A DNA stretch of 64,000 bases. Origin: Lepidodermella squamata. Taxonomy: Eukaryota; Animalia; Gastrotricha. The position numbers were made by a program, and so were the translations under genes. Below the pieces are notes generated by a model. That model was not told where the DNA came from. It saw nothing but the letters and a program-made list of their open reading frames with translations, and did no database searches. Positions 30,152-47,960 of the stretch are shown piece by piece. Numbering within the stretch: the first letter of the stretch is position 1; each line of letters begins with the position of its first letter. The DNA is taken from NCBI GenBank assembly GCA_047495785.1, contig JBLDXI010000006.1:62001-126000 (forward strand). The letters are read 5' to 3'.

Positions 30152-33100
30152 ATGCACATTCTCCTCATTATGCTACCCATCATGGACAATGTCTCAGGAT
30201 TCGGCCCGCCTTTACTATTGGTGCCTTACAATCGACAATATGGCACAACCAATATTGTGAATGGGTCGAAAACGCTAATAATATATGAAAGTCATGCTTC
30301 CTCAGCTGGCGTTATGCCACAAGCAGGTCCATTCGGTTACTTCGACAGCGCCTACACCGTCTCGCTAGGGGGGTCGTTGTCCACTTATTATTTAGAAGTT
30401 CACTCCTTCGAAAAACGCCAGCGAACAATTTCGACGTTCTTCTTCACATACGCCTCATCAGACCGACTGGCGAGAGGGATCGTCGAGTTTCGAGAGATGG
30501 AGTTCATAATTCGCGTCAGGTTTCAAGTTGCCAATTCTAGCGTTAACATAAGCGCACACAAGCCATACGATGGTTTCCACTCGTTGCAACCCATATCGAT
30601 GACTGTTGATAACGCATGGCAGCCGAGAAAATGGCACTTTATAGCTGTTGTCAGCCACAACGAATCACATTTTTCGGTATTTATGGGTGTCGAGCCGGCT
30701 TACGAACTCGTCAAGCTGGCAACTCTTGATGCAAGTGCTTTCAACGATCCTCAAAATAAGCCTATGCCATACTACATTCTGAAAATCGGTTTTATAGTAT
30801 GGGATATTGTAGTAAGCTTTGGTGTCACTTTCGCACATTCGCTGAACGATGACATTTTTTCAGGGAAAATTGGACACTCATAACGGAGCAACAGAAGGAT
30901 TCTCTTGCTTAGTGACCTACAATACGTCACTGACCCATCAGCAATTGACTTCAATCATCGATGGTTGTCGTGGTCTAAATGAAGAACTAATTTCAAAGCA
31001 AATAGGTCTCGTTTTAAAATTTTTTCAAGCTCTCGTATTCAATGATACTCAATGCAGTTGAAATTGTTGGGAAAATGGTGTATCAAGGCCTCGATTGGCC
31101 GCGAGCAGAAAAGCGTCGAGCAATCAAAGATCACGTGAGACAAATTTATTGACAACTTCAAGCCCTGGACCCCTAACCTAAAGATATTTTACTATTTTCA
31201 GTTGAACGAGATCTTGGGGAACATCTCTTACGGCCCACCGGATTCTTTCATAGCGAAACTTGAGAAGGGCATAGGCAATACCATCATTGCAACGTTTACG
31301 AGCATTATCCAACGAGCATATCCTTTTAATGCTAACCGCAGCGAAGAAAGTGTCTTGGAAGAATTAAGTGATTTAATTGCGAATAAAAACATCACGCTTT
31401 CATCGGCAACGCAAGGTGAGCTATAGAAGATGACCTGAAAATGCGGTTATTCGAAGTTTTAACTTGTAGCGGTGCCAATGCCAAGATCTTTCTCGTTGTT
31501 GGGCTTTTGGCCTATTGCATTGTACCATGGCTTTTACGATTTGGGCCCTCGTCGCCTGACGAGCAAGCCTTTGATCGAACAGCCTTCTTTTCCCAAGCAT
31601 GGCATTTTTGATTTCGCGGGCGTGTGGTTCAGCAGCCAAGTTTTCAAAGTTGACGATTTCGAGATCCCAATGCGATCTACCTCGGGTTTTACTGTATCCT
31701 TCTTCTACCTTTATGACCAATCTTTCCCCGGTATGAGGGGGATTGTCGAATTTCATCCGCACTCGGTCGTTTTCGGATATCAGGATCCTGGTGCTTTAGT
31801 TATCGAACTACCAGGCTGTATCATAGTAGCACCAGGTATATTCCCCAGATCGGAGTGGACTTTTGTAGGATTCGTGTTCTCCGCAGAGCCAAACACGCCG
31901 TGGCTAACAATTTTCAACAATTTCACAGCTATATTCGTTGTTGGAAAGCCGCCAAGCAACGATTTGGCGAAAACTTGGTGGTCTAAATCATCAGGATTCA
32001 CTGTTGGCTCATCGAACTGGACAGCAATGCCTCATGCGATAGCCGCGCTTTCAATTTATGACGGCAAGCTAGCGAGAGATGAGCTGTTCGCCGTTCAAGA
32101 TGCAATGCGTTACACCATATCGCGAGAAACATGCGGTATTTCCTCGAAATTATCGGAGACACCAGTGTCGCCTGTACAAAAACCAACATTTGCTGATAGT
32201 GGTCTATTCCCGTTTATTACAATCTCCAAAGGACAGTGTATATTCTCGTTGCTGACTGATAGAATTGTTATAACGAGCTATTCTTGCCGGGAAATGCTTA
32301 CGTCAAATTTTACTGGCAAGATCTCAAATGGACTCGTTATAGCACAGTTCGAAAAACCATACCCCAACATGAACGTTTGCCTACCGACATGCTGCAATGA
32401 AAAGATCTTGTGGAATGGTGACGCTTATATTGTTGGGCTTCGGGGGTCCAACTTTCTGGCATTACGCTACATTTCTGGAATACTAGTATCTCAATCCAAG
32501 TGTCATCGAAAAAATATCAGCGAGTCACAGCAATCAGACGGACCATTTCTATGCTTTCAAACGAAGCACGAACCCCTCTCACCCTGCGATTTACTCCCAG
32601 GTTCGGCTTTGCTGCTGACCATCGATAGCGACAATGCAACCCAGCTTGGAAGGAGATTTGTTCTCGTAATAGGAATCCTGAAAATCAACCTGCATCTATT
32701 TTTGATATTCTGTGTAGGCCGGCCTATACCTCGATGATCTCAGCGAAACTTGCGATTCAGGACCTCCCATCAAATTCAGGAACACTTTCTGGATGAGTGA
32801 ATGGATAAAAACTACTGCTGGCTGCCTCAATGTTCCGGCAAATCAGCCGTGCCCCTACATCTACGAGTGGGAAAACGTAACTGAAACTTTCACCACTGGA
32901 GCTGTTGTTGAAGAGAAAATACCGGTATCTGAAACAACAACACCGAGTTACGATCAACAAAGCTACACAGGTTTCTACTGATTTTTTATCATTGGCGGAT
33001 TTAAGGACAAATCGTCGTCGGCGCGTCAAAATCCCACTCGCGATCCTGAACTTCATTCGCGAAATTCTTGCTTATAATAATTCCGAATCAAATGAAAAAT

Positions 33101-36100
33101 ATTCAGAAATGATTAAAATAAAATAAAGAAATTTTTAAATATATGTTTTTTCATTTAATTGACCTTCACATTATTTTTGCGGGGTTTGCAGCCCGACGGT
33201 TTGGCGGTTTGGCGGTTTTCGGCATAAACCTTAACCTGTCCGCTGTTCGCTGTTGTTAGAAGTTGTTGCTGTTACCTTCTTGAGCATTTTGCTACGACAT
33301 GACAGTCGCTTAAAGGCCAGATAAGCTATCTCGTAGTGAAAATTGCTGTTTCGAGTTAATGATTACTAACATCTTGCCTTGGCCGATGGATGGAAGCAGC
33401 ATTTTGATAGCGCTTGGTTCAGATATCGTTCATCTCGCTTGATCAATACTGAAGTGCTTTTTGTCCAAGTAGCTACGTGTCAGCGATTATACTAAACGCT
33501 TGTTTCTCAGCCTGGGAATGTCTTCAATTGCTGGTATCACTAATATCGGCTTTTGCGCCCAAGCTTGGCCATCAGCATTATCACCATTGTCATTGTTTAA
33601 TTGGTTTTGCTTCAATAAAGGCAAACCAGCTTGCAGAAGTCTGAGCTAGGAAGTGTTAATGGCTGCGGGCATTTTGTTTTTCATCTAGCAAAGCCAGGGT
33701 GATAGACTGCTGCTATTAGAAACTTGAATACTCAATTAACCTGTATGGCATCTATCATGCGTTTCAACTTGATTCTTTCAATGTTCTGTAATACTGCTTC
33801 TCCATTAACCTTCTCAATGACCAGAGTCAACTATCAACTATCAACAGTTAGTGATAGTTGAATGTCATTTGAACTCAATCTAAAACCAGGTTTAACTGAT
33901 CAAAATCTTGTTTTGCTTGGAAGAAGACTTGATCTCACTTAGATCCACAAAGATTGGTGCGCATTGTTGTCTTTCTTGATGAACAATGACTTACTCGCGA
34001 GACTTATTGCCATCAACCGGAATGGAATCTGCATCGTTATGATTGAAGAGTATGGATTTTCAATGGGGTCCTGTTGCCTTGTCCCTAAACCCTGCTCCTT
34101 GCGTTGATTAAATCATTTTTATTAATATTGAAAATCAAATATTTAGATGAACGCGTTTAAACCACTGTGTTTAATTGTTTTATTCTTCGGCGCCGTCTCG
34201 GCGGCCGTGTTTTGTATTGATAAAACAGGTTATTTCATTCCGTTACTTCTCCACAAATGTTAATCTATATCGGTTTTTAGAGGAGAACCTGGCCGCCTGT
34301 GCTGTGGGCGAGGGCCCTTGTGGGCCTTGGTGCCTAACTGCTTCTGCAACCACTGCACCTAGTGCAACTACTGCTGCAACCACTGTACGTAGTGAAACTA
34401 CTTCTGCAACGCATGAATTCACGGGATTCGCCGGATTCAGTATGTTTACTTTCTTAACGGTCGAATTCGAATTTATTTGGAATGTATCAATTATAGAGAT
34501 CCGACATGATTTGGTCGATTTGGTCGAGCTCCTCCTGACCGCCGTCTCCCTGTTAATTTTTGGATTCGCAATTGTCATCGGCGCCATCACCGGCGTAAAA
34601 GCCTGGTGGGACGGGCGGCGAGCGGCGGGCCAGCTTGTTGCCGCCGCAACTTCGGGAGCACTGCAGGCAGTCGAGGCGGTCCAACCACTCATCGAACGAA
34701 TCTCTATTCCTGTCGAGGCGATCGCTGCCATGCAGCCCCAGCTGGAACGTGTCCTGTCTACACAGCCTAAGTTGAACAAAGAGCTCTCCAGTCTGCTTCG
34801 AAGCCAGGTCAACCACGGCGGCAGTACGCCCCACCTCCGTGGCAGAACGGAAGTTCTTTCGGTCCCGCTGCTTGACCAATCTCGCTCTTCTAGAAGCGGC
34901 TGGAAAATAGTAAGCTTTATTGCCTAGTTTTTATCGCATGTTTGCATGTGCATGTCATTTTCAAGTCGAACACTTCGCAAACTGTTCGCTGAAGAAATAC
35001 GAAAATTGAAAATACGAATTACGAAGATGAGAGATCCAAAGATGAGAGTGAAAGATCCAAAGAAGATTGATTCGATTGATCCAAAGACGTTTGATTCGAA
35101 GAAGATTGATTTGAAGAATGAAAGATTTTCAAGACGATGAAATGATGCACCAAACTAATGCTGTTTTCTCTTTATAGGTTTCTTGACTACTTATTCAGAA
35201 AGTAAGTATTTGAAATTTAATTGATGCAGCCAGGCATGGTTGAAGCTTTGTCGATGCAGCCAGGGAAGTTTTTAACATCAGCGCTTGTGTACTAATGCTG
35301 GTTTTTTTATTTTAATCACGTGCAGTTGTAGAAATTAATTCTCGTTTTAGATGATATTATTTTACTTATTTTTTCTATAACGCTGAGGCGAATAATCTGG
35401 ATTTACTCATCGGATTCGGCGCATTGATTGCGGTTGCTTTGTGTTGCTTGGAGGGTGTAAATTTCTGGATCAGGCTGAGAAATTAGTATTCGGATTTATT
35501 TGGAGTGTATCAATTATATACATCCGAAACAAGCCCCAATATCGGTGCAACACAGTGGTTCGTTGTCTATTAATCTGACAGCGAGGCGATGTAACGTATT
35601 GCCGTTTTTTTAGAAACAAATTTCTGATTGTCTTGCACGAGAGCCAGTGGTACCCGCGAGAAAGGGCGATGAAACGCGCTGCTCAACCGATCTATTATGC
35701 CGGGCTTCACTCCGGATTTCACTGTTTCAACTGATCTCATTCATGGTAATCTGCCGTGATTACAATTTTCTGATTACAATTGTAACATTTTTCGTTCGCC
35801 TAGATCATCAAAGCCACGTTGGGCAACTGCTTGGTTACGGGACAACTGGAATTTTATGACCTATCGAACTTCTTCTCATTGATTTTAAGCTGTTATTTAC
35901 AATGAAAACAACGGAAGTGATCAAATAAAGTTAATTTATTGATTCAAATTCGTCCTTATCTTCCTCGCTTGAATCATCGTCGCTTAAATCATTCACAATA
36001 TCAAAAATGACAGCTCGTTCGTCAAATCTATTGAGATCATTTCCAAGCACATCACGCCGAATCGGGTTTACAAAGCGACAAAATTGCAGAGGGTGACCAA

Positions 36101-39100
36101 GTTGTTGAAACAATGTAAATTTGTCAACAGCTTCAGTTTTGACAAAACACTTGAGATTTTCGAGAGATATTTGAGCATTCAGGCGGCCGCGTTCATGGTA
36201 CTCATCACTAGTCATCACTTGCCCGCATCCTGAATGAAAACTGCTGAAACAAGCTGGGTCTGATATTACAAATTGAGCTTTCGAAGGATTCGAGTTGGCA
36301 TTTTCAACCCGAGAATTTTCTTTTATTGCAAGCTTTCGAACAGGCACGCTCATCGTAGCATATTTTCCAACGGAATAAATAATTTTCAGTAGCAAGTTGT
36401 TAGCCACATCCAGAACAAGTAGAGAGATCGCTCCAAGTAACTTCACTACGTACTTGAAAAGAAAGCTCAAAATCAACAGCAGGAATAGTAAAGCTGTAAG
36501 GTACAAACTTTTGTGGCCACCGCTGGTGTATACGATAAGAAATCCGGCAATGCGCAAATATACACCCATCAAGCATGAAAATCTAGTGTTTTCAATCGGC
36601 TTCGAAAGATAGAATAATGTAAAACCCACGAATGCCGATAAGATCAGTGAAATGAACACAAAATTGACACAAATTTGTCGAATGTAAGCAGCTAATCGGT
36701 GCAAAGCTAGAGTTGAGCTTAAAATAGTTGCTATGAACGCTGATGGCTTATTATTTCTGTAGCTCGAAGAAAAAAATCTAACAGAGCAAAAAACGAAAGC
36801 GATTATCGACGCTAGTACGGCCAAGATGGAACCAGTTGAATAAAACAAGAAGGGCCTCTCCGCCAGGTAAGGTGAGAAAAATACTAGTGCTGAACCGATC
36901 AAAATGAAAGCTATAAAAGAGCGAGAGAAGGGCATGAATGTGTAGGAGATTTTGTATTTCGAATCAAAGAAGCAGACGGCAAATTGAACTCGGCGGTATG
37001 GGTCAACAGCAAACTTCGAGTTTCCCAACAAACGGTCGAACATTATTGATTTCGAATAGTCCAGGACTGTATCCATAACGTTCGAAATTGAGCGCGTGGC
37101 ATTTAAACAACTGACAGTAATAAATTCGTCAGTATCTTCTGCCACCGAGATCACGACTGGTTGGGGAGATACATGCGAAGAATCTAGGCGAATAAACTGA
37201 ACCTAAATGAGGAAGTTATTTCAAATTTAGACTCGAATAAAATCTTCAATAGATAACTAACTTGACCATGCTGCCAGAAATCCAACAGTTCGTCCTGTTT
37301 GACAGGATTGAAAACGAAAACGTCAATGCTGTTAATCCCTGGCTCGATGACGGCTGACAACGAATCGGAAGAGCCAATTTCATAGCGATTGATTGAAACA
37401 AGCCCTAGAACTGGTTCGCCAAGGCACGAGAGAAACAACAACAGCGACATGACTAGGAGCTGAGAACTGTGACTATAGGCTGACATCCAGGGTCTCCAAA
37501 TTGCGTACGGGTCGATAAATCGAATAAAAATTGCGTAAATTCGAGCGAATTCGTATTGCTTTCGATCGATAGAAGGCGCAAATGAACGACGCCAAAACTA
37601 TCACTCCGATAGCCAGTAGAATTGACACAACGACCCAGTAGTTGGGAGTTGGGAGTGATAACGGTAGTGACGAGTCAGATTTGACCGATGAAGTAGGGTG
37701 GATTTGCGCCTTTGGATTGCCCTTGTTGAACAGAAACCAGTTTTCAAACGAAAAATCCGGGGATGAATTCATTTGAAGCGATAAAATTAATTAAAAAGCC
37801 ATGGTAATGCATTCAAATCTAGATTCTAGAAAATTGATAAAAAATTGAGAAATTAGCCCATTGAAGAGAAATAAATTTAATCAAGTCACACGACAATGAC
37901 AAATATAATTTTGATAAATAATAAATAATTTTTTTTGAGGTCTGCAAAACAATAATAAACAAATGGCCACAATAAATTTCTTTGAGCTCTGTCCAAGAAT
38001 TATAAATTATTATCACTTCCGTTCTGTGAAGCTATCCTGATATTCGTGGAAAGCTGATTTTTATCGAACAAGCGTCGAAGTTCAGATCAGCGCCATCGGA
38101 TGCTTTGTGAGAGTTCATCATCATCATTCGTCGTCGCCGAAGTGGTCATCGTCATCGTCATCATCGGCGTCTTCAACATCATTAACATTCGCCCCCAGCA
38201 TTAGATATTTCTGTCGAACGTCGGCTTTTCTCTTTTCAATCTCAGGCTTCTTCATTTTTGAAGGAATCTCGCCAATTTTGTCGAGATAGGGCAAAGGTAT
38301 AGCACCTACAAATCAAATTTAAATACATTTCGGAGACAGAAATATAAATGACCAAGCGCTGAATGAAATTCGATGAAAATAGGCAGACTCAGAATTAATT
38401 AGCCGAAAGATTTTAATCAAATAACCGATTTCTTGCTGTTCCAAATTTCGCAAAGTTCGCTTAATACCATGTTCCTATTGCTAGGATTTGTGCTCAAGAT
38501 CAAATTCGACCTTAACTACTAATTTGGGAGAAATTTCAACTCACCTTCTTTCACCCATTTGAACATGTCCTGCATTTTCTTGGAAGTGAGACGGAGTTCA
38601 CTAGCCACTTTAGGCGGATAGGCCATGGTTTTCTTATAGGTGAACTTCTTATTGGAATCCGTGGCGTCAAACGCTTCGTAAGGCGTTTTGTAGTCCCAAT
38701 CTTGCTTACCTTCGAGCAAGTTGTAATTATCGGTATACCTATAGCAGGAGAAGCGATTAAAAAGTCCACGTTGGCCTTTCGCGACAGGTAGATCGAATCT
38801 TTCTGTATAACTGGGCCCGTGTTTCGCGTTATGAAATTGACCGTGCTTCATTTCGCGAATGATGAAAGGCGGATCGCCGGCAATCGATGCACCCAAAATG
38901 GCGTCTAAAAAAATACAATTTGAAAAATAATCGAAAAAATCCCGACGAATTTAGCAAACAACTATCTAAAAATTTTCATTGATCACGAATCTTTAAATCA
39001 AGGCGAGCGAGCGATCTAAGAACTAAGAGTCGACAATTCTATTCGATACAACGATGGATTCTACCTCCAGAAAGGATCTTTTTAGTTAAGTGAACACCTG

Positions 39101-42100
39101 AAGTAATCCGGGACAAATACAAGTAGTTATGCCCGTGAAGACGAGCAAGAATCAGCGGTGATCTATGTCCAGGCAAGATTGTTGCTAGCTATGGCTGCTG
39201 TTCTGTTGGCTACGGCATGATTGAACACCAGGTGAAAGAGTACGTAGGACGAGCAAGAATCAGCGGTGATCTATGTCCAGGCAAGATTGTTGCTAGCTAT
39301 GGCTGCTGTTCTGTTGGCTACGGCATGATTGGACACCAGGTGAAAGAGTACGTAGGACGAGCAAGAATCAGCGGTGATCTATGTCCAGGCAAGATTGTTG
39401 CTAGCTATGGCTGCTGTTCTGTTGGCTACGGCATGATTGGACACCAGGTGAAAGAGTACGAAGTCCCTGTCACCGACGACGGCCTGTGCATCCTCGAGTA
39501 TGAATTGCAGCTGCAGACACGGCGATTACGCCACGGCTGTTATGTACGGACTAGTCATAACTTCCAGACTCGCCTTTTGGCATGAAGAACAATGAAGCAC
39601 GAACGTGAAAGAAACGAATCAGATTCGCGGCAAAATTGCATTCTCAGTCGATTCAATCCGTGTTTTAATCGAAATTCTTATCTTTACCATCCTTATCCGG
39701 CTTCGATTTAGCCAACGAGGGTAAGAGAGGTAACCATTTCAGAAGAAGGAAGCGAATAGCCCAGCTGTTAAATTCGCCGGTCTCAACTCGGAAACGTGAA
39801 GTCAAAGCAATTTCGCTAGAATATCCCGAAAAATTAAGGCGGATTACGTGACAAACGGCCGCAAAAATTCTCGAATATTCGCCGATTTTCGAAAGTTGAA
39901 TAACTGATCGAATTTCATCGATAATTCCGATTTAAATTCCGAGTGCAGTTTTCCGATTTCCGAAAAGACGCTTTCATCAGATTAGAACAAGTTCAACATT
40001 TCAGACCGGAAATTAGAATGAACAATCGGTTCGGTTTCTGCCAAACGGTAGTCAGTGAAACGCATTCTTCTCTTTATTGCGAGGAAGTTGAGCAGGGGGT
40101 TCGGCGGCAGGGTTAATTTGCAAGCGACGCGCCTCCGGTGTTAATTAAGATGATGATAACAGCCTGGATAAACCTTTTACGCCCTAGGTCATCAGGTTCG
40201 AACAACTCACTCGGCGTCAGGAATGAATTGAGTTAAGGATTAATTCCGCTGTCAAGCTACTATTCAAGCTACTATGAACTTCTATGATCAACGATTCAAT
40301 TTCGAATAATTTCGATAATCCTTAATTATTGGCTTGAATTCAACAATAACTTCAAGTTCAGAATTACTTCTCCAGTCGGTTGGGAATGCCAAGGTGCGAA
40401 TTCGTCGCGCATTCCGTTCAACGGCGCTATGAATTGTGTCGCAGGGTTGCTGAGAATGTCCGACCTAAAGGCAGGTACAATAAAAGCAGGTTTTAATAGA
40501 ATAAGCACGATTCACTCATCTCTCCCGCACTTGAAATAGCCAGGTGCCACGTACAGGTGCTAACTATGTACTAATATTGGTGGCAAGTTGCGGATCATTT
40601 CCGGATCAGAACTCGGTTAATTTCCCAGCAAAAATATTGAATTAATCATCGGCCTCCTTTTTAAAGCAGGTCCAAACTTAAAAGTTCCCACAGAAAGCCC
40701 AGGACAACCTACCTAAATAAGTCAAAACCAAGTTGCACTATAATTGAAGGGGACCTTGATATTTTCTACTAAACATAACGTCACAAGAAAGTGCTTGCTT
40801 GCTTACCACAAAAAAGCGATGTTCAACTGTTCGCAAGGCTCTTCCAGATGCTTTGGCCTCTTGAATGGCCAAATACAGAAAATTCGGAAAATAAGAGTTC
40901 TTGTTTTGACCTAAAAAAATTCAGAAAGTGCAAAATCTCAACGAAAAATTAAGCTAGCTCCAACCTCCAGCGCTATCTGACCACAAGTAGACATGTTCGA
41001 CATCAGGACTCAAGGTCTCCGTTAAATACCTAAAAGGAAAGCAGAATAATTTTGCGCTCAAGCCATTAACACCTACTTTAGAATGCAAGTTCCAACTTCA
41101 GATACGCCTTTTTTCCTAGAAAAATATAAGCGCTTGATGAAATCTCGCTTAATTGTAATTCCAATTACCCTTCATACTCCTCGAATAAATAGTGAACGGC
41201 TTCGCGGGTTACCACATTTAAAACGGTAATATCCCGAGTCTGGAGCTTCGAGTGATACCTAAAAAACACAATGATTCAAGCATTTTGAGAATCGAACTAT
41301 TGAAACTTGCTTAAATTGACAGCAGGGAGTTTCGAGATTTTTCATGAAATCAAAATTGATGACAGCTATTTTGCCGCCACTATTCTTCGCTCTTTCCACA
41401 TCCTGAGCTAAAATCCTCCTAGCGCGATGCTTTCGCTTCATGTGCTTCTCCAGCAGCTTTTTCAGCCGTTCCTGGTTCGGCTTCGAGTCTGTTTTCGATA
41501 GGGATTCAAGGCGCGCGCAAAATTTGCATTTATCAACCTGTGCCAACAGAATGAGTTAAATAATTTACCCCATTTATAAATAATCAATTAAAGAAACCTT
41601 TGGTCTTTGGAAAGCGAGTTTCGGAAAACATCGTTTGAAGATCTGTTTGAAGGTCGTAAGTGAAACGGGCTGATGCACATGCGACTTGCTAGATGTCGGC
41701 GCAGTGCTAGCGAACTCTCTTTGCAGCTTTTCTTCCTGCTCAACGTATTCGCGATGAAGAGAAGCTAAAGAATGAAAGGAATCGATGTAGTCCTTGTCCG
41801 AAGAAGCTCTTTTGTAGTGCGATGGAAGCTTCTCAATGCTCATAATGAATGAAGTAGCGGAATCAAGACGTTCTTTAGAGATCTTCCCAACGCCTTTTTT
41901 CTTCCCGCGGCCATCCGGAGCAATAACAGCTCGAAACTTTGTTTGCTTATTCATCAAGGTGTAATTAATGACATCGAAGGAGATTTGCAGCGCATTTGTA
42001 AAAAAGTAACGGCAAACCTATAACCGAAAGCTTTAAATATAAAATGTAGGAATGATCACTATACCGACCGGCTCGTCATAGGGCCTGTTATGCATTGTCT

Positions 42101-45100
42101 TGTCCAAGGCAGCTTCTGATGGCAGTCGGTACCGGTAATAGCAACGCTGTTTACCGTTCTTCACTGTCATTTGCGAAGGAATTGACACAAAGCGAGCGAT
42201 GAATTGCCTGCGATCTTTGATGTCACCTGAACGCCAGAATTCCTTGCACAGCTTTTTGATTGCTTCGTCTGTGAACTTGGTGTAGCATTTTTCCGGACAC
42301 TTGCAAATAACACGCTTCCCAATCTTAGCCCGAACCATCTTGGCAGGCCGAATAATTGTGCCATCTCGCGATTTCTGAGCTCGCTTGAGGAACTGCTTTC
42401 CACTGTTTCTCAGCTTGAACTCGCGGTCTCTATTACGGGACTAGAAATGCAATAATGACAAGAGATACAAATTGCTGGAAATTCAAGCTTACCTTTCTCA
42501 CTCGTGGATCGACATGAGAGGGAAGCTTCGGTTTAGCCAATTCGCGTAAATGTCGTGGCAAAGACGGTGCCATATCGACGCCTGCATTTAATAAATTTCC
42601 TACAAAATACAACAACACAAATTTATATTTATTGAACATTCGGCATTGAGATGTCGGTTATTGAGAAATACTTTCCATTAAGTTCCATGAGAATAATAAC
42701 AAGAGAGCGATAAATCTGTTCTTGAGCTAAAACAGGTTGGCATCCATGATGATTGAAAGGATCTATCGTTATCAGAGATCAGTTGATCAGAAAGCCAATG
42801 ATAAAAAAATTTATTATAAGAAACGAAAGGCAAGATTTTAAAGTGACTAAAACGCAAGCAAGACGACAGCCAAATTATTTTCAAAACAGGCAAGAGAAAC
42901 GTGATTGGCGGTGAAGGTAGCTGCTAGCTGCGAGACTGGATTAAGCGCGCCTCTGTCTCGTCGATCTGATGGGAAAGTTGGCGAGGTCTTTGGCCAACTG
43001 ATCGGTCTGAGCATACTTCCGAGGATTATTCTCCTTATCGGTAAGAGCATAGACCATCAGATCGTTCTCCTGATTTACCTCGACCGGTGTAGGAGCAGTA
43101 GCGACCTTGCCTGACAAGAAAGCTGGCCATTTCAGCCATATTGGGCGGCGAAATAAAGCAGCCATGGCTTCCTCACGCTTGCAAGCCCAATATGCATACG
43201 CTAGAAGTACATAACGCACAATCAGCACAATTAGATGAGCGTCAAGGCCAGCATCGCTGATCGCCTCAGAGGATTGCGTAATGTACCATTCTATCGCTGC
43301 CATGGGGAAGAAGCTAGACGTGAGCAGGCAACGTTTGAAGGTAGCGGAAAAGAAAAACAGCGACCAATAAAACAACGTTTGGGTCTCAAAAAAATCCTCA
43401 GTGAAGACTGGAAACACTTGCGATAACGCGGATTTAACAGCCGCCGTTTCAAAAGAGCTCTCGAGGGCTTTTTGGGCCGATTGGTAAGACTGAAGTACGG
43501 ACTTTTTGAAGAGCAAGTCGACAAAAAAGTGTTGAGTGTACTCGCTTACAATCTAAATGAGAATTATAAAGCAAATAAGTACAATTTATCCGTCAGAATT
43601 TAATACACACTAACCGGGGTCCAGGGCGATTTCGTGTAGTTGAGGTAGCAGCAGACGGCGCTTGCATCGCTATAAGCTTCAAGGAGAGAGCTCAAAGCTT
43701 CATGATTTCCGCTAACCTTTGGCAGCAGCTTAGCTATAGTTGGTTTTAGTGGCAGTTTGTCATCGGCCTTGGCTTGGTAACAATTATACAGCATCGAGGC
43801 TAAATGGGTCCGGCTGTCTTCAGGCAAAGGCCATTTGCAGCCATCAGAGGCAGTGAAGGTCAGCCAAGCCTCGACACAAGCCTTGCCGGTGCCTTTGTAT
43901 TTTTTAAGGCGATCCATCGACCGAGAACCAGGCTCTTTGTCGCGAAAAGTGCAGCCCTTGAGTTTATCATCGACCTCCTCCGACTTGACACCATCAAACA
44001 CAGAGACGGATGACGGTTTCATTGATGGTAACTCGGCTATTTCATCATTATCATTATCCCCCGAGGGCTCAAGTCTTCCCGCTCCCGGCTCCGCCTTCTC
44101 AAACTTAGCGAGAACAGCATTGACAGTGGATAACACATCCTTGTTGTCTTTGTCATGCTTAAGAACAGCTGCCAGGGTTTCCAGCACATTGAGCGCGCTC
44201 TGAGTGTTTGTAGCAGCTGTGGTTGTCTTAGTCCTAGCTACAGAAGTTGACGATCTGGACGGGGATGGAGTGACGCTGGCTCCGACGACGATGGAAGACG
44301 GAATAGTCGTATCTGTTTTTACCAATGGTTCGGTAAACCAATTGGCGCGCTTGAACAGTTGCTTTGCATTTGGATGAAGAGCAAAGCAGCACAAATACTC
44401 GGACTCTCCGTACAACCAAGTGAATGTCGGAAATGAAACTTCGTCGACTTTCGCTGCGCAAGACTTTAGGGTATCCGCCTTAGGGCTGCAGGTCCCCTTG
44501 CTGTAGCAGTCGAACAAAGACAGTGCCCTGACAACGCGGAGCGAAGTTTCACCTGAGCAACCACAGATGCCGGCGGTGCTTTCCATTAACTTCAACTGTT
44601 CAGTAAGGCAGGACCTGAGGTTAGCGTCCTTCAGCTGAGCAACCTTTTCGTAGAAGCGATGGCCATGCGAATACAGCAACTGCCAATCGGTCGCAATGGA
44701 AGTGGCAGGTGCTGCAGTTGACGCCAACTTGGTCGGTTTGGTTGCTGATGCCGTGGCGGACTTGCTGCTGGTTGCTTGCGTAGAAGTCGACGGGGATAAC
44801 GTACTAACTGTCGTGTCAGCTGTAGCCGACCCATCGTCTTCGTTATCAGCTTCATCACGTCCATCATCGCCGTCAGGTTGACCGTTTTCCTGTTCTTGCG
44901 GCTTTTGATCTCGCTTTAGGCGGATATGACTGCGGAGCAAGATCGACTCAGGGACGGACTCTGAGGCGTCCTGTGCAATCAACCCAAAGATGAGCAGCAC
45001 GGCAAGCGGAATAACTTGCATATCAATAAATTTAGCCGATAAATCTATAAAAGTGGAAAATAACGACACAAGTATCAATTGTTTTATGCCTGCAAGATAT

Positions 45101-47137
45101 AATGTTGCTGGCCAGGCTTCTTAAGACTTGTAAAGTGAGGGAGCGAGATAGCAAGCATCTGCCGACTGCTTAGCTAGTAAATGATTGAGGGATACTTCTG
45201 ATCCATCTACTGTAATGAAAGCATCCAGCAGTTGGCCATGATGTCAATGCGCTACTACGATAGTTTCCCATCGTCGGGGCAATGTTTGCTTGGCATCCCA
45301 ACTTTCTAATAATAATAATAATTTCGTTTTCAAAGCGAACTTCAAGGACCAGAAGGGCATGCCACTTGCTCTAACGCTAGGTCTTAACGTAAGTGAGAGA
45401 TATGAACATCGTAAGACTGAGTTTGACTGGTGCAGTCTAGCTGACACTCCCAGGTTCCCAATTTACTATTTTGTAACGCCATTGATTGGTAACACCACCG
45501 ATGGAGACTCGATCCTGGTTCCATCACTAGGACTTGAACCCAGTCCCGAGCGATATCCCCTCAGATACACAGTTGCTCATCGACCCAACTAAGCCACCGT
45601 GCCTCTTATTCTACCTACTCATCTCTGGCACGAGTATTGAACTCCCAACTTGTAGGTATGGAATTGATTGTTATGGGAATTGGTTTCATTGTCATCGATT
45701 TCTGGCTAATTCAGCTGCAATTGCCAAGTGCCAAATGCTGCTATAAAACCAGACTGCAATAACGATAACTGTAAAAATTTGCATGTTTGCATATTCTCGC
45801 CTCATCTGGGACGCCATCTTGGATTTTGCCTCTTTTTTGTTCCCTGTGAAGGTTAAAAGCCAGGAAAATGATATTTTCATTTTATTTTTATTTTATCAAA
45901 CATTTAAATATAAATTCACTCATTATTAATTATTTCTGTTTAAATTTGTTTTCGCGTGGTTTTCAGGCAGAAATTTGCGAGTGGGATTTTGACGCGCCGA
46001 CGACGAAATTATCTTTCATTTCCCGGTTAGCTGTACTGATTGCGATTATCCTGGGTGTTACAGCCGTAATGACTATACTGGTCATAGTAGGCGTGATCTT
46101 GTACAGAAGGAGGTCTAAATCTTTGGTAAAGCGATTCATCGGCATGTCATTTGAGTCTGAAGCTGCTGATGCTGCGAACTACATCGAAGCTATAGCAGAC
46201 CTATCTAGTCTTCTGAAGGACTTGCCGCAGGCTGAAGAACTCATAGAACAGTTCAAGCCTATCAACATTCAGCCCGAAAGGATCCAACTGAATGAGTTTG
46301 TTGGCGAAGGTCAGTTCGGCTCCGTTCATCGAGCCAGTCTTAAAGACTTTGATAGCAACAGCGAAATCAAGATCGCAATCAAGAGTGTCAAACCAGGTTC
46401 CGCATCAAAATTGACTGATTTTCTAAGAGAAGCCCTCATCATGAAAGATTTCTCTCACCATAATGTTCTGCCCCTTATTGGAGTAGCTGCCGTTAACGGC
46501 ACGCCATGCATCGTTGCTACGTTCATGGCTAAAGGCAGTCTAGATCAATTTCTGAAGAAAACAGACGATGACCGGACTGAAGCGGTGCTTATCGACTACT
46601 GCCTTCAGATTTGCCGTGGCATGGTCTATCTTTCATCGAAAAATTGCCTCCACCGAGACCTCGCTTGCAGGAACGTCCTGGTCTCGGATGATTTCGTGTT
46701 GAAAATCAGCGATTTCGGAATGTCGCGCATCCTCGACACCGATAATGTTTACTACAAGCTGCAAAACAGTGGTGGTGAATTGCTGATACCGATTCGCTGG
46801 TACCCTCCTGAATCCATCGAGCAAATGAAATTCGGCCCGAAAAGCGATGTTTGGTGTTTCGGCGTGACGATGTGGGAAGTATTTTCAGGTAAAACCTAAT
46901 GATCTCTCAATACACCTCCAATATTCATTTTGCGTACTAGAGTGCAAATCGATCCCGTATGAAGGACTGGACACGTCATCAGTGGTAGTTCGAATCACGA
47001 CTGGTAAGGTGCTGGAAAAACCCTTGAAATGTCCCGAGCCAGTCTACGAGAAAGTGATGACAAAATGTTGGCTGGAAACGGCGAGTGACCGCCCATCGTT
47101 TGAAGAGCTGGAAGGAATGATTGTAGAGAATGACTGA
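30152..47137 (+). CDS. Receptor tyrosine kinase: SP, LamG-like, SEA-like, LamG-like, pseudo-trypsin, stalk, TM, kinase
   Basis: Approximate exons 30152-30811, 30864-31005, 31058-31134, 31202-31415, 31470-32665, 32718-32970, 46031-46888, 46941-47137 splice in frame. Kinase has GEGQFG, IAIK, HRDLACRN, DFG and PIRWYPPE. Removing the transposon leaves a normal 63-bp phase-1 intron. Confidence 0.82.
34147..34927 (+). CDS. Cargo: type I membrane protein with small Cys domain and Thr-rich stalk
   Basis: ATG at 34147 gives the signal peptide MNAFKPLCLIVLFFGAVSA. Phase-1 introns 34229-34280 and 34440-34496 splice in frame. One TM (LLLTAVSLLIFGFAIVIGAITGV). 3' end uncertain. Confidence 0.65.
35931..37486 (-). 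CDS. Cargo: NEMP/TMEM194-like nuclear envelope integral membrane protein
   Basis: Signal peptide and an in-frame intron at 37261-37203. LVFFSPYLAERPFLFYSTGSILAVLAS matches the NEMP TM1-2 motif. MTSDEYHERGRLNAQISLENLK...HPLQFCRFV matches the conserved C-terminal NEMP region, followed by an acidic tail. Confidence 0.85.
37473..37772 (-). CDS. Cargo: 99-aa single-pass membrane protein
   Basis: Clear TM (WVVVSILLAIGVIVLASFICAFY) followed by a basic stop-transfer segment. Overlaps the first NEMP ATG by 14 nt. Confidence 0.55.
   Translation of the reverse strand: MNSSPDFSFENWFLFNKGNPKAQIHPTSSVKSDSSLPLSLPTPNYWVVVSILLAIGVIVLASFICAFYRSKAIRIRSNLRNFYSIYRPVRNLETLDVSL
38124..42573 (-). CDS. Sola1-type DDD transposase, 11 exons
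   Basis: CKC..KC...F, VCRYFF..ALQIS, DGRG, SHYKR, F.RPK.DKC..C, FDFMKNL.TP (D1), WSDSAGGQNKN (D2), GHSQQPCDTIHSAVER (D3), PF.I.EM, and an acidic tail. All junctions are in frame if intron 4 uses a GC donor (~41310). Confidence 0.88.
39140..39460 (+). repeat. ~3 x 108-bp tandem repeat encoding a DM9 (DUF3421)-like fragment, inside a transposase intron
   Basis: Near-identical units start at 39140, 39248 and 39356. They translate as YVGRARISGDLCPGKIVASYGCCSVGYGMIEHQVKEY(EV), matching DM9 YVGR..PGK..YEV. Confidence 0.85.
42941..45021 (-). CDS. Cargo: GEX1/KAR5/Brambleberry-like membrane protein with two Cys-rich domains (~672 aa, 2 exons)
   Basis: Signal peptide from MQVIP and an RLKR site. CRD1 is SC...C...R...ALSLFDC...TC......SC..KVD.....F.....E...CC. 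CRD2 is AC...C...R..LA..LYNC...AY..A.AVCCY. An in-frame intron (43614-43553) joins an exon with ~3 TMs. Confidence 0.7.
45305..45642 (-). mobile_element. tRNA-derived SINE-like element nested in the Sola1 element
   Basis: On the minus strand: A box TGGCTTAGTTGG (45596-45585), B box GGTTCAAGTCC (45540-45530), an (ATT)n tail near 45307-45322, and flanking 9-bp direct repeats tcccaactt. Confidence 0.6.
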
Positions 47138-47375: not shown

Positions 47376-47669
47376 TTACAGCGAGAATTTTGAGTATGGA
47401 TCAAAGTAAGAAGATGATCTGAGTTGTCAAATGAGATAGATGAGATAGAGAATACTAGAAAACATTAACCGGACCATGCTCTTCAGCTTCCATTTTTCTC
47501 TGAATCGAAACAACTTTCAAATTAATATCGTTAATTTAACTGCCTGACCATCTCATGAAGCTAATTAATTAAATTGTAAATTGTATGCTTTCGTTAGTAA
47601 ACTGAGATCGACATTTGGATCGTGCAGAATACGAAAGTGAACGAAAACGAATAGAGCAATGCTGCAAAT

Positions 47670-47834
47670 CGTTCGTGGCGCGGAAGAACCCGCACTTCGA
47701 TGATTTTTTGCCCTGACTGTACCCCGCGAGTACAGCCTTGGATACTATATGCAATACTGCGCGTTATGCTGTACTCGCGGGGTACAGTCAGGGCAAAAAA
47801 TCATCGAAGTGCGGGTTCTTCCGCGCCACGAACG
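47670..47834. mobile_element. Foldback MITE, probably non-autonomous Sola1
   Basis: ~67-bp perfect inverted arms starting cgttcgtggcgcgg. AAAT TSD at 47666-47669 and 47835-47838. Excision restores channel helix M4 (MIDSCFVICSIALFVF). Confidence 0.88.
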
Positions 47835-47960
47835 AAATGACGAAACAGCTATCAATCATGCGAACCAATCCAACATGTCCGTTAAGGACACGCAACTGCG
47901 GCCTCCTTTTGTATTTGGATCAAAGAAAGATGCAGCCAACCATAAAATTAGAAGGTTATA

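Follow-up and report, generated by a model that had tools for sequence, protein, structure and literature searches.

A Lepidodermella squamata DNA transposon carries a gene for a predicted membrane protein with two candidate GEX1-like cysteine-rich domains

To our knowledge, the widely conserved factors on which nuclear membrane fusion depends are limited to proteins of the GEX1/KAR5/Brambleberry family. All family members that we know of harbor a single cysteine-rich domain (CRD) and are encoded by host genes. Here we describe a gene that lies within a DNA transposon of the gastrotrich Lepidodermella squamata, and whose predicted product harbors two CRDs with a weak yet measurable resemblance to those of this family. 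It was found in a stretch of 64,000 nucleotides (assembly GCA_047495785.1, contig JBLDXI010000006.1, positions 62,001 to 126,000 of the forward strand), called the window below and used for all coordinates.

The family is marked by a signal peptide, a CRD near the N terminus with six conserved Cys, one to three coiled coils and two to three transmembrane (TM) segments at the C-terminal end. The spacing between the six Cys is 12, 23, 14, 11 and 25 in Kar5p, and 12, 20, 13, 9 and 22 in the Arabidopsis protein AtGEX1 (PMC7586128); Suppl. Fig. 6A of the latter work shows the CRD for nine GEX1 proteins of land plants (PMC7586128). The conserved Cys of Kar5p are essential, and links between Kar5p molecules across the perinuclear lumen have been proposed. 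The Arg-rich tail of plant GEX1 proteins has been proposed to function as an RXR-type retention signal for the endoplasmic reticulum (ER), and Arabidopsis GEX1 with a masked C terminus reached the plasma membrane.

We propose that the L. squamata gene is an intact transposon cargo gene coding for a 672-aa membrane glycoprotein with two divergent, tandem CRDs of the GEX1/KAR5/Brambleberry type, a reading for and against which we find the case evenly balanced.

A two-exon gene and its predicted product

The gene is on the minus strand and comprises three parts:

43615..45021, minus strand: exon 1, aa 1-469, with the signal peptide, RLKR, spacers, CRD1, a helical segment and CRD2 (open reading frame [ORF] and translation)
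43553..43614, minus strand: intron of 62 bp, GTTAGT...TTTAG, canonical GT-AG, with an in-frame stop codon, TAA, 12 nt in (sequence signals)
42944..43552, minus strand: exon 2, aa 470-672, with a helical stalk, the hydrophobic block and the cytosolic tail (translation; third-position bias among paralogs)

Translation would start at the ATG at 45021 and end at the stop codon that follows exon 2, at 42943-42941. The ORF listing of the window contains the minus-strand ORFs 43600..45078 and 42941..43516, and joining GTTAGT (43614) to TTTAG (43553) removes exactly 62 bp while keeping the frame, yielding a product of 672 aa from exons of 469 and 203 codons, both of a length divisible by three. The acceptor AG belongs to an in-frame TAG, so that the frame of exon 2 opens exactly there. 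An intron of ~54 bp in the adjoining kinase gene is comparable in size. A first-pass annotation of this DNA had joined the two ORFs in frame over a 62-bp intron into a protein of ~672 aa, and both the ORFs and the exact join are borne out at the sequence level. With its open frame and intact splice signals, the predicted two-exon gene is real and intact. A 151-nt record in a sequencing run labelled metagenomic RNA-Seq spans the intron unspliced; it is probably DNA and not a transcript. A retained intron would close the reading frame at its TAA, 12 nt in, and leave a secreted form of 473 aa.

The spliced protein was divided into the following features:

44974..45021, minus strand: signal peptide, aa 1-16 (MQVIPLAVLLIFGLIA; with a hydropathy of 1.4-1.8 across aa 1-24, cleavage site judged by eye)
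44911..44922, minus strand: RLKR, aa 34-37, a putative R-x-K-R dibasic site of the furin/Kex2 type (regular-expression search of the spliced protein)
44689..44832, minus strand: spacer 1, aa 64-111, Ser/Thr/Ala/Pro-rich (79% S+T+A+P)
44347..44625, minus strand: CRD1, aa 133-225; Cys 138, 153/155, 172, 178, 188 and 211/212 make up the six Cys positions
44206..44325, minus strand: spacer 2, aa 233-272, Ser/Thr-rich (62% S+T+A+P)
44107..44205, minus strand: helical segment between the CRDs, aa 273-305, two helices (predicted local distance difference test [pLDDT] score of 59-64 in AlphaFold2, the best of the model though low)
43615..43890, minus strand: CRD2, aa 378-469; Cys 382, 395, 414 and 457/458 correspond to positions 1, 2, 3 and 6
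43181..43381, minus strand: hydrophobic block, aa 527-593, comprising a single strong TM segment (572-593) and weak helices at 528-545 and 552-569
42944..43180, minus strand: C-terminal tail of 79 aa (594-672), ending in RSTRQRRA, with an RXR-type RQR at aa 668

The hydrophobic residues 1-16 are followed by a polar region, and residues 38-63, just after RLKR, are acidic (44% D+E). These data agree with the signal peptide, the acidic stretch and the Ser/Thr-rich spacers reported in the first-pass annotation, which had placed RLKR one residue too early, at aa 33-36. Its count of about three TM segments was upheld for the strong hydrophobic helix only, the other two (~528-545 and 552-569) being weak. 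CRD2 is preceded by a further Cys at position 357, upstream of its span, giving a Cys cluster at 357-458 overall, and it contains a single N-x-T site, NYT at aa 461. The only helical stretches in the low-confidence AlphaFold2 models are 33 and ~57 residues long (aa 273-305 and 470-526).

Resemblance of the cysteine-rich domains to plant GEX1

We compared the two CRDs with four of the nine printed GEX1 rows, those of Arabidopsis, rice, Marchantia and Physcomitrium, all of them land plants. The six Cys of CRD1 are spaced by 15, 19, 6, 10 and 23. Beyond the Cys themselves, plant GEX1 proteins and the L. squamata protein have in common A-x2-L-x-D-C-[FY] at Cys 3 and S-C-x2-K-h-D-[DE] at Cys 5, and the context of Cys 6 in CRD2, D-A-x-S/A-x-C-x-Y-L, is also found in plant GEX1.

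Pairwise similarity was assessed by Smith-Waterman alignment against composition-preserving shuffles, with 3,000 shuffles per test. With Marchantia GEX1, CRD1 gave a z score of 4.0 (reached by 3-13 shuffles) and CRD2 a z score of 4.8-5.2 (0-4 shuffles). With the Physcomitrium protein, CRD1 was not significant and CRD2 scored a z of 5.2-5.5 (1-4 shuffles), while Arabidopsis GEX1 gave z scores of 2.3-3.1 for CRD1 and 1.8-2.0 for CRD2. The window has 755 ORFs that are 40 aa or longer; for three of the four GEX1 queries, the exon-1 ORF was the best raw match among them, by small margins. A HMMER profile built from three or four GEX1 CRDs gave isolated CRD2 a score of 7.6 bits, which 3-8 of 5,000 shuffles reached, whether Cys were fixed or free.

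The strongest match was obtained by comparing profiles with hhalign. A two-row profile of CRD1 and CRD2 aligned with the four-row GEX1 profile with a score of 27.0 (P=2.5e-4, probability 43%), and the two domains aligned to GEX1 in one register. None of 1,500 shuffles overall attained that score: the top scores were 22.7 for shuffles of the query columns (n=600), 24.1 for shuffles with the Cys columns fixed (n=500) and 21.0 for shuffles of the template columns (n=400), and the reversed template (n=1) scored 13.0. CRD2 alone gave P=0.0032 and a probability of 9.9% against the same profile. The match to GEX1 is better once CRD1 is combined with CRD2, as would be expected from homology among all three domains. 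By these measures the similarity to GEX1 is statistically real for one protein, at P ~1e-4, and it rests on residues other than Cys in addition to the Cys.

A duplication of the domain within the protein was also indicated. When only CRD1 and CRD2 were aligned with MAFFT, C138 and C382, C153 and C395, C172 and C414, and the CC doublets fell in shared columns. The CC doublet at Cys 6 is common to both domains, and Smith-Waterman alignment of one with the other gave a p value of ~0.018. This gives modest support to a duplication of the CRD, which, as a statement on these two domains, we rate slightly above homology to GEX1.

Several results weigh against homology. CRD2 lacks Cys positions 4 and 5, and BLASTP found no match between CRD1 and CRD2. 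Rice GEX1, one of the four orthologs, was not significant in Smith-Waterman alignments with either domain. With the HMMER profile described above, CRD1 scored at chance level, and a window-wide hmmsearch with the GEX1 profile ranked the whole ORF only fourth or fifth, with an E value of 1.5. The GEX1 profile is very small and made up of plant proteins only; its rows were entered by hand from machine-read text, with one residue missing in that of AtGEX1. The gene was chosen for its family resemblance, so that a P value of ~1e-4 is indecisive at genome scale and might arise by chance. A long coiled coil is not evident, as judged from the low-confidence AlphaFold2 helices. AlphaFold2 run without an alignment gave models too poor for fold comparison (pLDDT of 39.5 for aa 100-469 and 41.3 for exon 2).

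Database searches add to these points. No homolog was found by a word search of 5.8 billion proteins with exon 1, CRD1 and exon 2, nor by an ESM Atlas feature search with the same three queries, a sequence search of the PDB, or scans of metagenome contigs with exon 2 and both CRDs and of viral contigs. phmmer found no match for exon 1, animal relatives included, among 1.84 billion representatives, a library that does not hold the proteins of this genome, since exon 1 failed to match itself. An exact-protein look-up of the exon-1 ORF product likewise returned no record. Pfam searches with both exons and with each CRD alone gave only chance-level matches, with none to PF04163 (Tht1) at E<=10. 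As a control, the genuine CRD of Marchantia GEX1 was found to have no Pfam match either, and the Pfam result is therefore uninformative for family membership.

On balance, we lean towards homology of these domains to the GEX1/KAR5-type CRD. The first-pass annotation had recognized this likeness and a doubling of the domain, and had proposed searching family profiles with each CRD. The spacing, the motifs and the profile match (hhalign, none of the shuffles) speak for the likeness, whereas the hidden Markov model (HMM) and pairwise results were marginal and rice GEX1 was blank. For the doubling, Cys in register, the CC doublet and the Smith-Waterman result stand against the BLASTP result and the two missing Cys of CRD2. 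The profile comparison was positive with GEX1, if at a probability of 43%, and blank with PF04163, where it does not inform.

The transposon, its insertion site and its other cargo

The gene is contained in an element of 12,993 bp bounded by perfect 29-bp repeats and a 4-bp AAAT duplication:

33013..33041, unstranded: left terminal inverted repeat, 29 bp, preceded by the AAAT target-site duplication (33009-33012)
45977..46005, unstranded: right terminal inverted repeat of 29 bp, complementary to the left one at 100%, then AAAT (46006-46009)

The element is a cut-and-paste DNA transposon that carries the GEX1-like gene as cargo, and this location changes the most likely purpose of the gene. From right to left, the element contains the GEX1-like gene, transposase-like pieces, a tandem repeat, a NEMP-family gene and an ORF for a small membrane protein. 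Two of these are as follows:

40291..42440, minus strand: transposase-like ORF remnants in three frames, with the motifs VINFDFMKNLETP, LWSDSAGG and VGHSQQPCD
35934..37154, minus strand: main exon of the NEMP-family gene, the second cargo gene (Pfam PF10225, E=3.2e-16, 60.2 bits vs a cut-off of 28.7)

The transposase-like remnants had no Pfam match. The repeats are identical and the target-site duplication is intact, yet the transposase frame of the element is broken, which suggests that this copy moved recently and may rely on the transposase of another copy. Upstream of the NEMP-family gene (region 35934-37772, minus strand), small ORFs encode a signal peptide (37184-37486) as well as a TM segment (37473-37772). 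Between the transposase remnants and the NEMP-family gene, at 39140-39463, a 108-bp unit occurs in three tandem copies that are 98-100% identical. The only long plus-strand ORF of the element, at 34175-34927, is a cargo ORF of 250 aa with a Thr/Ala-rich stretch and a TM segment, and it had no Pfam match. A tblastn match of the TM region of the GEX1-like protein elsewhere in the element was weak and crossed a stop codon, and it was rejected.

Around the two ends of the element (32990-33012 and 45940-46040), the flanks, once joined, can be read as one open frame that spans the juxtamembrane and TM regions of a receptor tyrosine kinase (...FFIIGGFKDKLSFISRLAVLIAIILG...), indicating that the site of insertion lay within, or at the edge of, a host coding exon. 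Inside the right end, a polypyrimidine-AG signal (ttttcag) ends at 45966, and the open frame after it, AEICEWDFDAPTT, continues in phase into the host exon, so that splicing of the host kinase gene across the 13-kb insert might still occur. A perfect inverted repeat of 68 nt, its arms separated by a 31-nt loop, is found at 47669-47835, just beyond the element and downstream of the kinase exons.

Contigs of one sequencing run (X1) are ~80-87% identical to exon 2 and reveal paralogs in the same genome. The differences between the paralogs and exon 2 fall at third codon positions in 20 of 38 cases (p=0.011), which we take as a rough sign of coding constraint. One paralogous contig has many small indels relative to exon 2. 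Separately, 43514-43929 is matched at ~98% identity by two 151-nt records of run X3, which dates from 2020 and bears the label metagenomic RNA-Seq, indicating that the organism or a close relative was present in an environmental sample.

Alternative readings, possible roles and comparison with known systems

If the likeness to GEX1/KAR5 arose by chance in a short helical Cys domain, the gene would encode a lineage-specific orphan glycoprotein kept as cargo by the transposon family. We consider this rather unlikely. Blank database and family searches, the non-significant HMM scan of the window, CRD1 at chance level against the HMM, the blank with rice GEX1 and an hhalign probability of only 43% are what such an orphan would lead one to expect. 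It is less easily reconciled with a profile-profile score that none of the 1,500 shuffles reached, Cys-fixed ones included, with the register that both domains share with GEX1, or with an architecture and an Arg-rich tail that fit GEX1, and the partner gene in the element encodes a nuclear-envelope protein. Should the resemblance fail, the gene would be an apparently constrained orphan passenger of large transposons, of moderate interest for the study of mobile elements. A different possibility starts from RLKR soon after the signal peptide and from the two Ser/Thr-rich spacers: the product could be a cell-surface or secreted, "envelope-like" adhesion or fusion protein, cut at RLKR by a furin-type protease, displayed at the plasma membrane on O-glycosylated stalks and maybe involved in the passage of the element between cells. 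The secreted form of 473 aa predicted for a retained intron would suit it, as would the arrival of Arabidopsis GEX1 with a masked C terminus at the plasma membrane. Motifs make up the whole of this case, though, and the tail ends in the RXR-type RQRR, the kind of signal proposed for ER retention of GEX1; no similarity to a known viral or cellular fusogen was found in Pfam or the PDB, and the viral contigs were blank. A surface protein of this kind is improbable in our estimation. The first-pass annotation had taken the furin-type site and the stalks as hints of trafficking beyond the ER; by analogy with GEX1, the RSTRQRRA tail would suit residence in the ER or nuclear envelope at least as well.

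The gene could also be a silent or decaying passenger, a gene fragment captured by a non-autonomous transposon copy and since deprived of expression or splicing. The transposase of this copy is broken over several frames and one paralogous contig carries indels. The search of sequencing runs found the gene in no RNA run, only DNA and paralogs, so that splicing and expression are predicted, which also counts against our proposal. On the other hand, 672 codons are open across both exons with the splice signals intact, the differences among paralogs favor third codon positions, and the perfect terminal repeats indicate a recent move. Decay thus appears very unlikely.

If the proposal of an intact cargo gene for a doubled-CRD, GEX1-like protein is correct, the large N-terminal part of the protein, with its two helical, disulfide-bearing CRDs, would face the lumen of the ER or perinuclear space, or the cell exterior. 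After cleavage of the signal peptide, and with one or three membrane passes, the CRDs, the spacers and NYT (aa 461) would be lumenal or outside, and the 79-aa tail would be cytosolic or nucleoplasmic. With Kar5p and GEX1 as guides, one would expect the CRDs to mediate lumenal protein-protein contacts, possibly disulfide linked, and, as Kar5p suggests, a tandem CRD could tether or cross-link partners. The hydrophobic block may anchor the protein in the ER or nuclear envelope, as in the known family members, and the Arg-rich tail may hold it there, as proposed for GEX1. Together with the NEMP-family gene product, it could then remodel or tether nuclear-envelope membranes to the benefit of the transposon. 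Such a role for the cargo set is plausible because the neighboring gene encodes a NEMP-family nuclear-envelope protein. A more far-reaching idea is that a selfish transposon family carries its own nuclear-envelope kit, a doubled-CRD GEX1/KAR5-like protein and a NEMP-family protein, with which it would remodel or fuse nuclear membranes, either in the germline or in the early embryo, to favor its own transmission. We regard it as speculative and quite unlikely; if true, it would be a tangible example of a long-standing notion, namely that fusion of cells or nuclei is promoted by parasitic DNA.

Homology, if true, would make the doubled CRD, the short helices and the mobile carrier new for the family. 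It would imply that mobile elements can recruit nuclear-envelope machinery, provide a natural variant with tandem CRDs and short helices for dissecting the role of the CRD, and prompt one to ask how a changed nuclear envelope profits a cut-and-paste element. Our literature searches returned no report of a GEX1/KAR5-like or NEMP-like gene as transposon cargo, and a GEX1/KAR5-type gene, should the resemblance prove true, would be an uncommon passenger for such an element.

Among known systems, GEX1 of plants and protists shares with the L. squamata protein a signal peptide, a lumenal six-Cys CRD of similar spacing, the residues that flank Cys 3, 5 and 6, some three hydrophobic helices close to the C terminus (two of them weak here) and an Arg-rich cytosolic tail. 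Unlike GEX1, the L. squamata protein has two CRDs, of which the second lacks Cys 4 and 5. Further differences are the CC doublet in place of a single Cys 6, the Ser/Thr-rich spacers, RLKR and the lack of evident long coiled coils; the protein is encoded in an animal transposon and not by a host gamete gene, and the similarity is seen only at the profile level, at P ~1e-4. Kar5p/Tht1 of fungal karyogamy (PF04163), compared by description, likewise has a signal peptide, a six-Cys lumenal domain and C-terminal membrane anchors, whereas it differs in its two coiled coils and two TM segments, and the protein described here has no PF04163 match. Brambleberry, which acts in karyomere and pronuclear fusion in zebrafish, is an animal member of the family with the same general architecture, as judged from its description in the literature. 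As for the carrier, it resembles gene-carrying ("giant") DNA transposons in its perfect terminal repeats, 4-bp duplication, transposase remnants and several passengers within 13 kb, and it differs from them in the nature of these passengers, which are membrane proteins, one a true member of the NEMP family and one GEX1-like.

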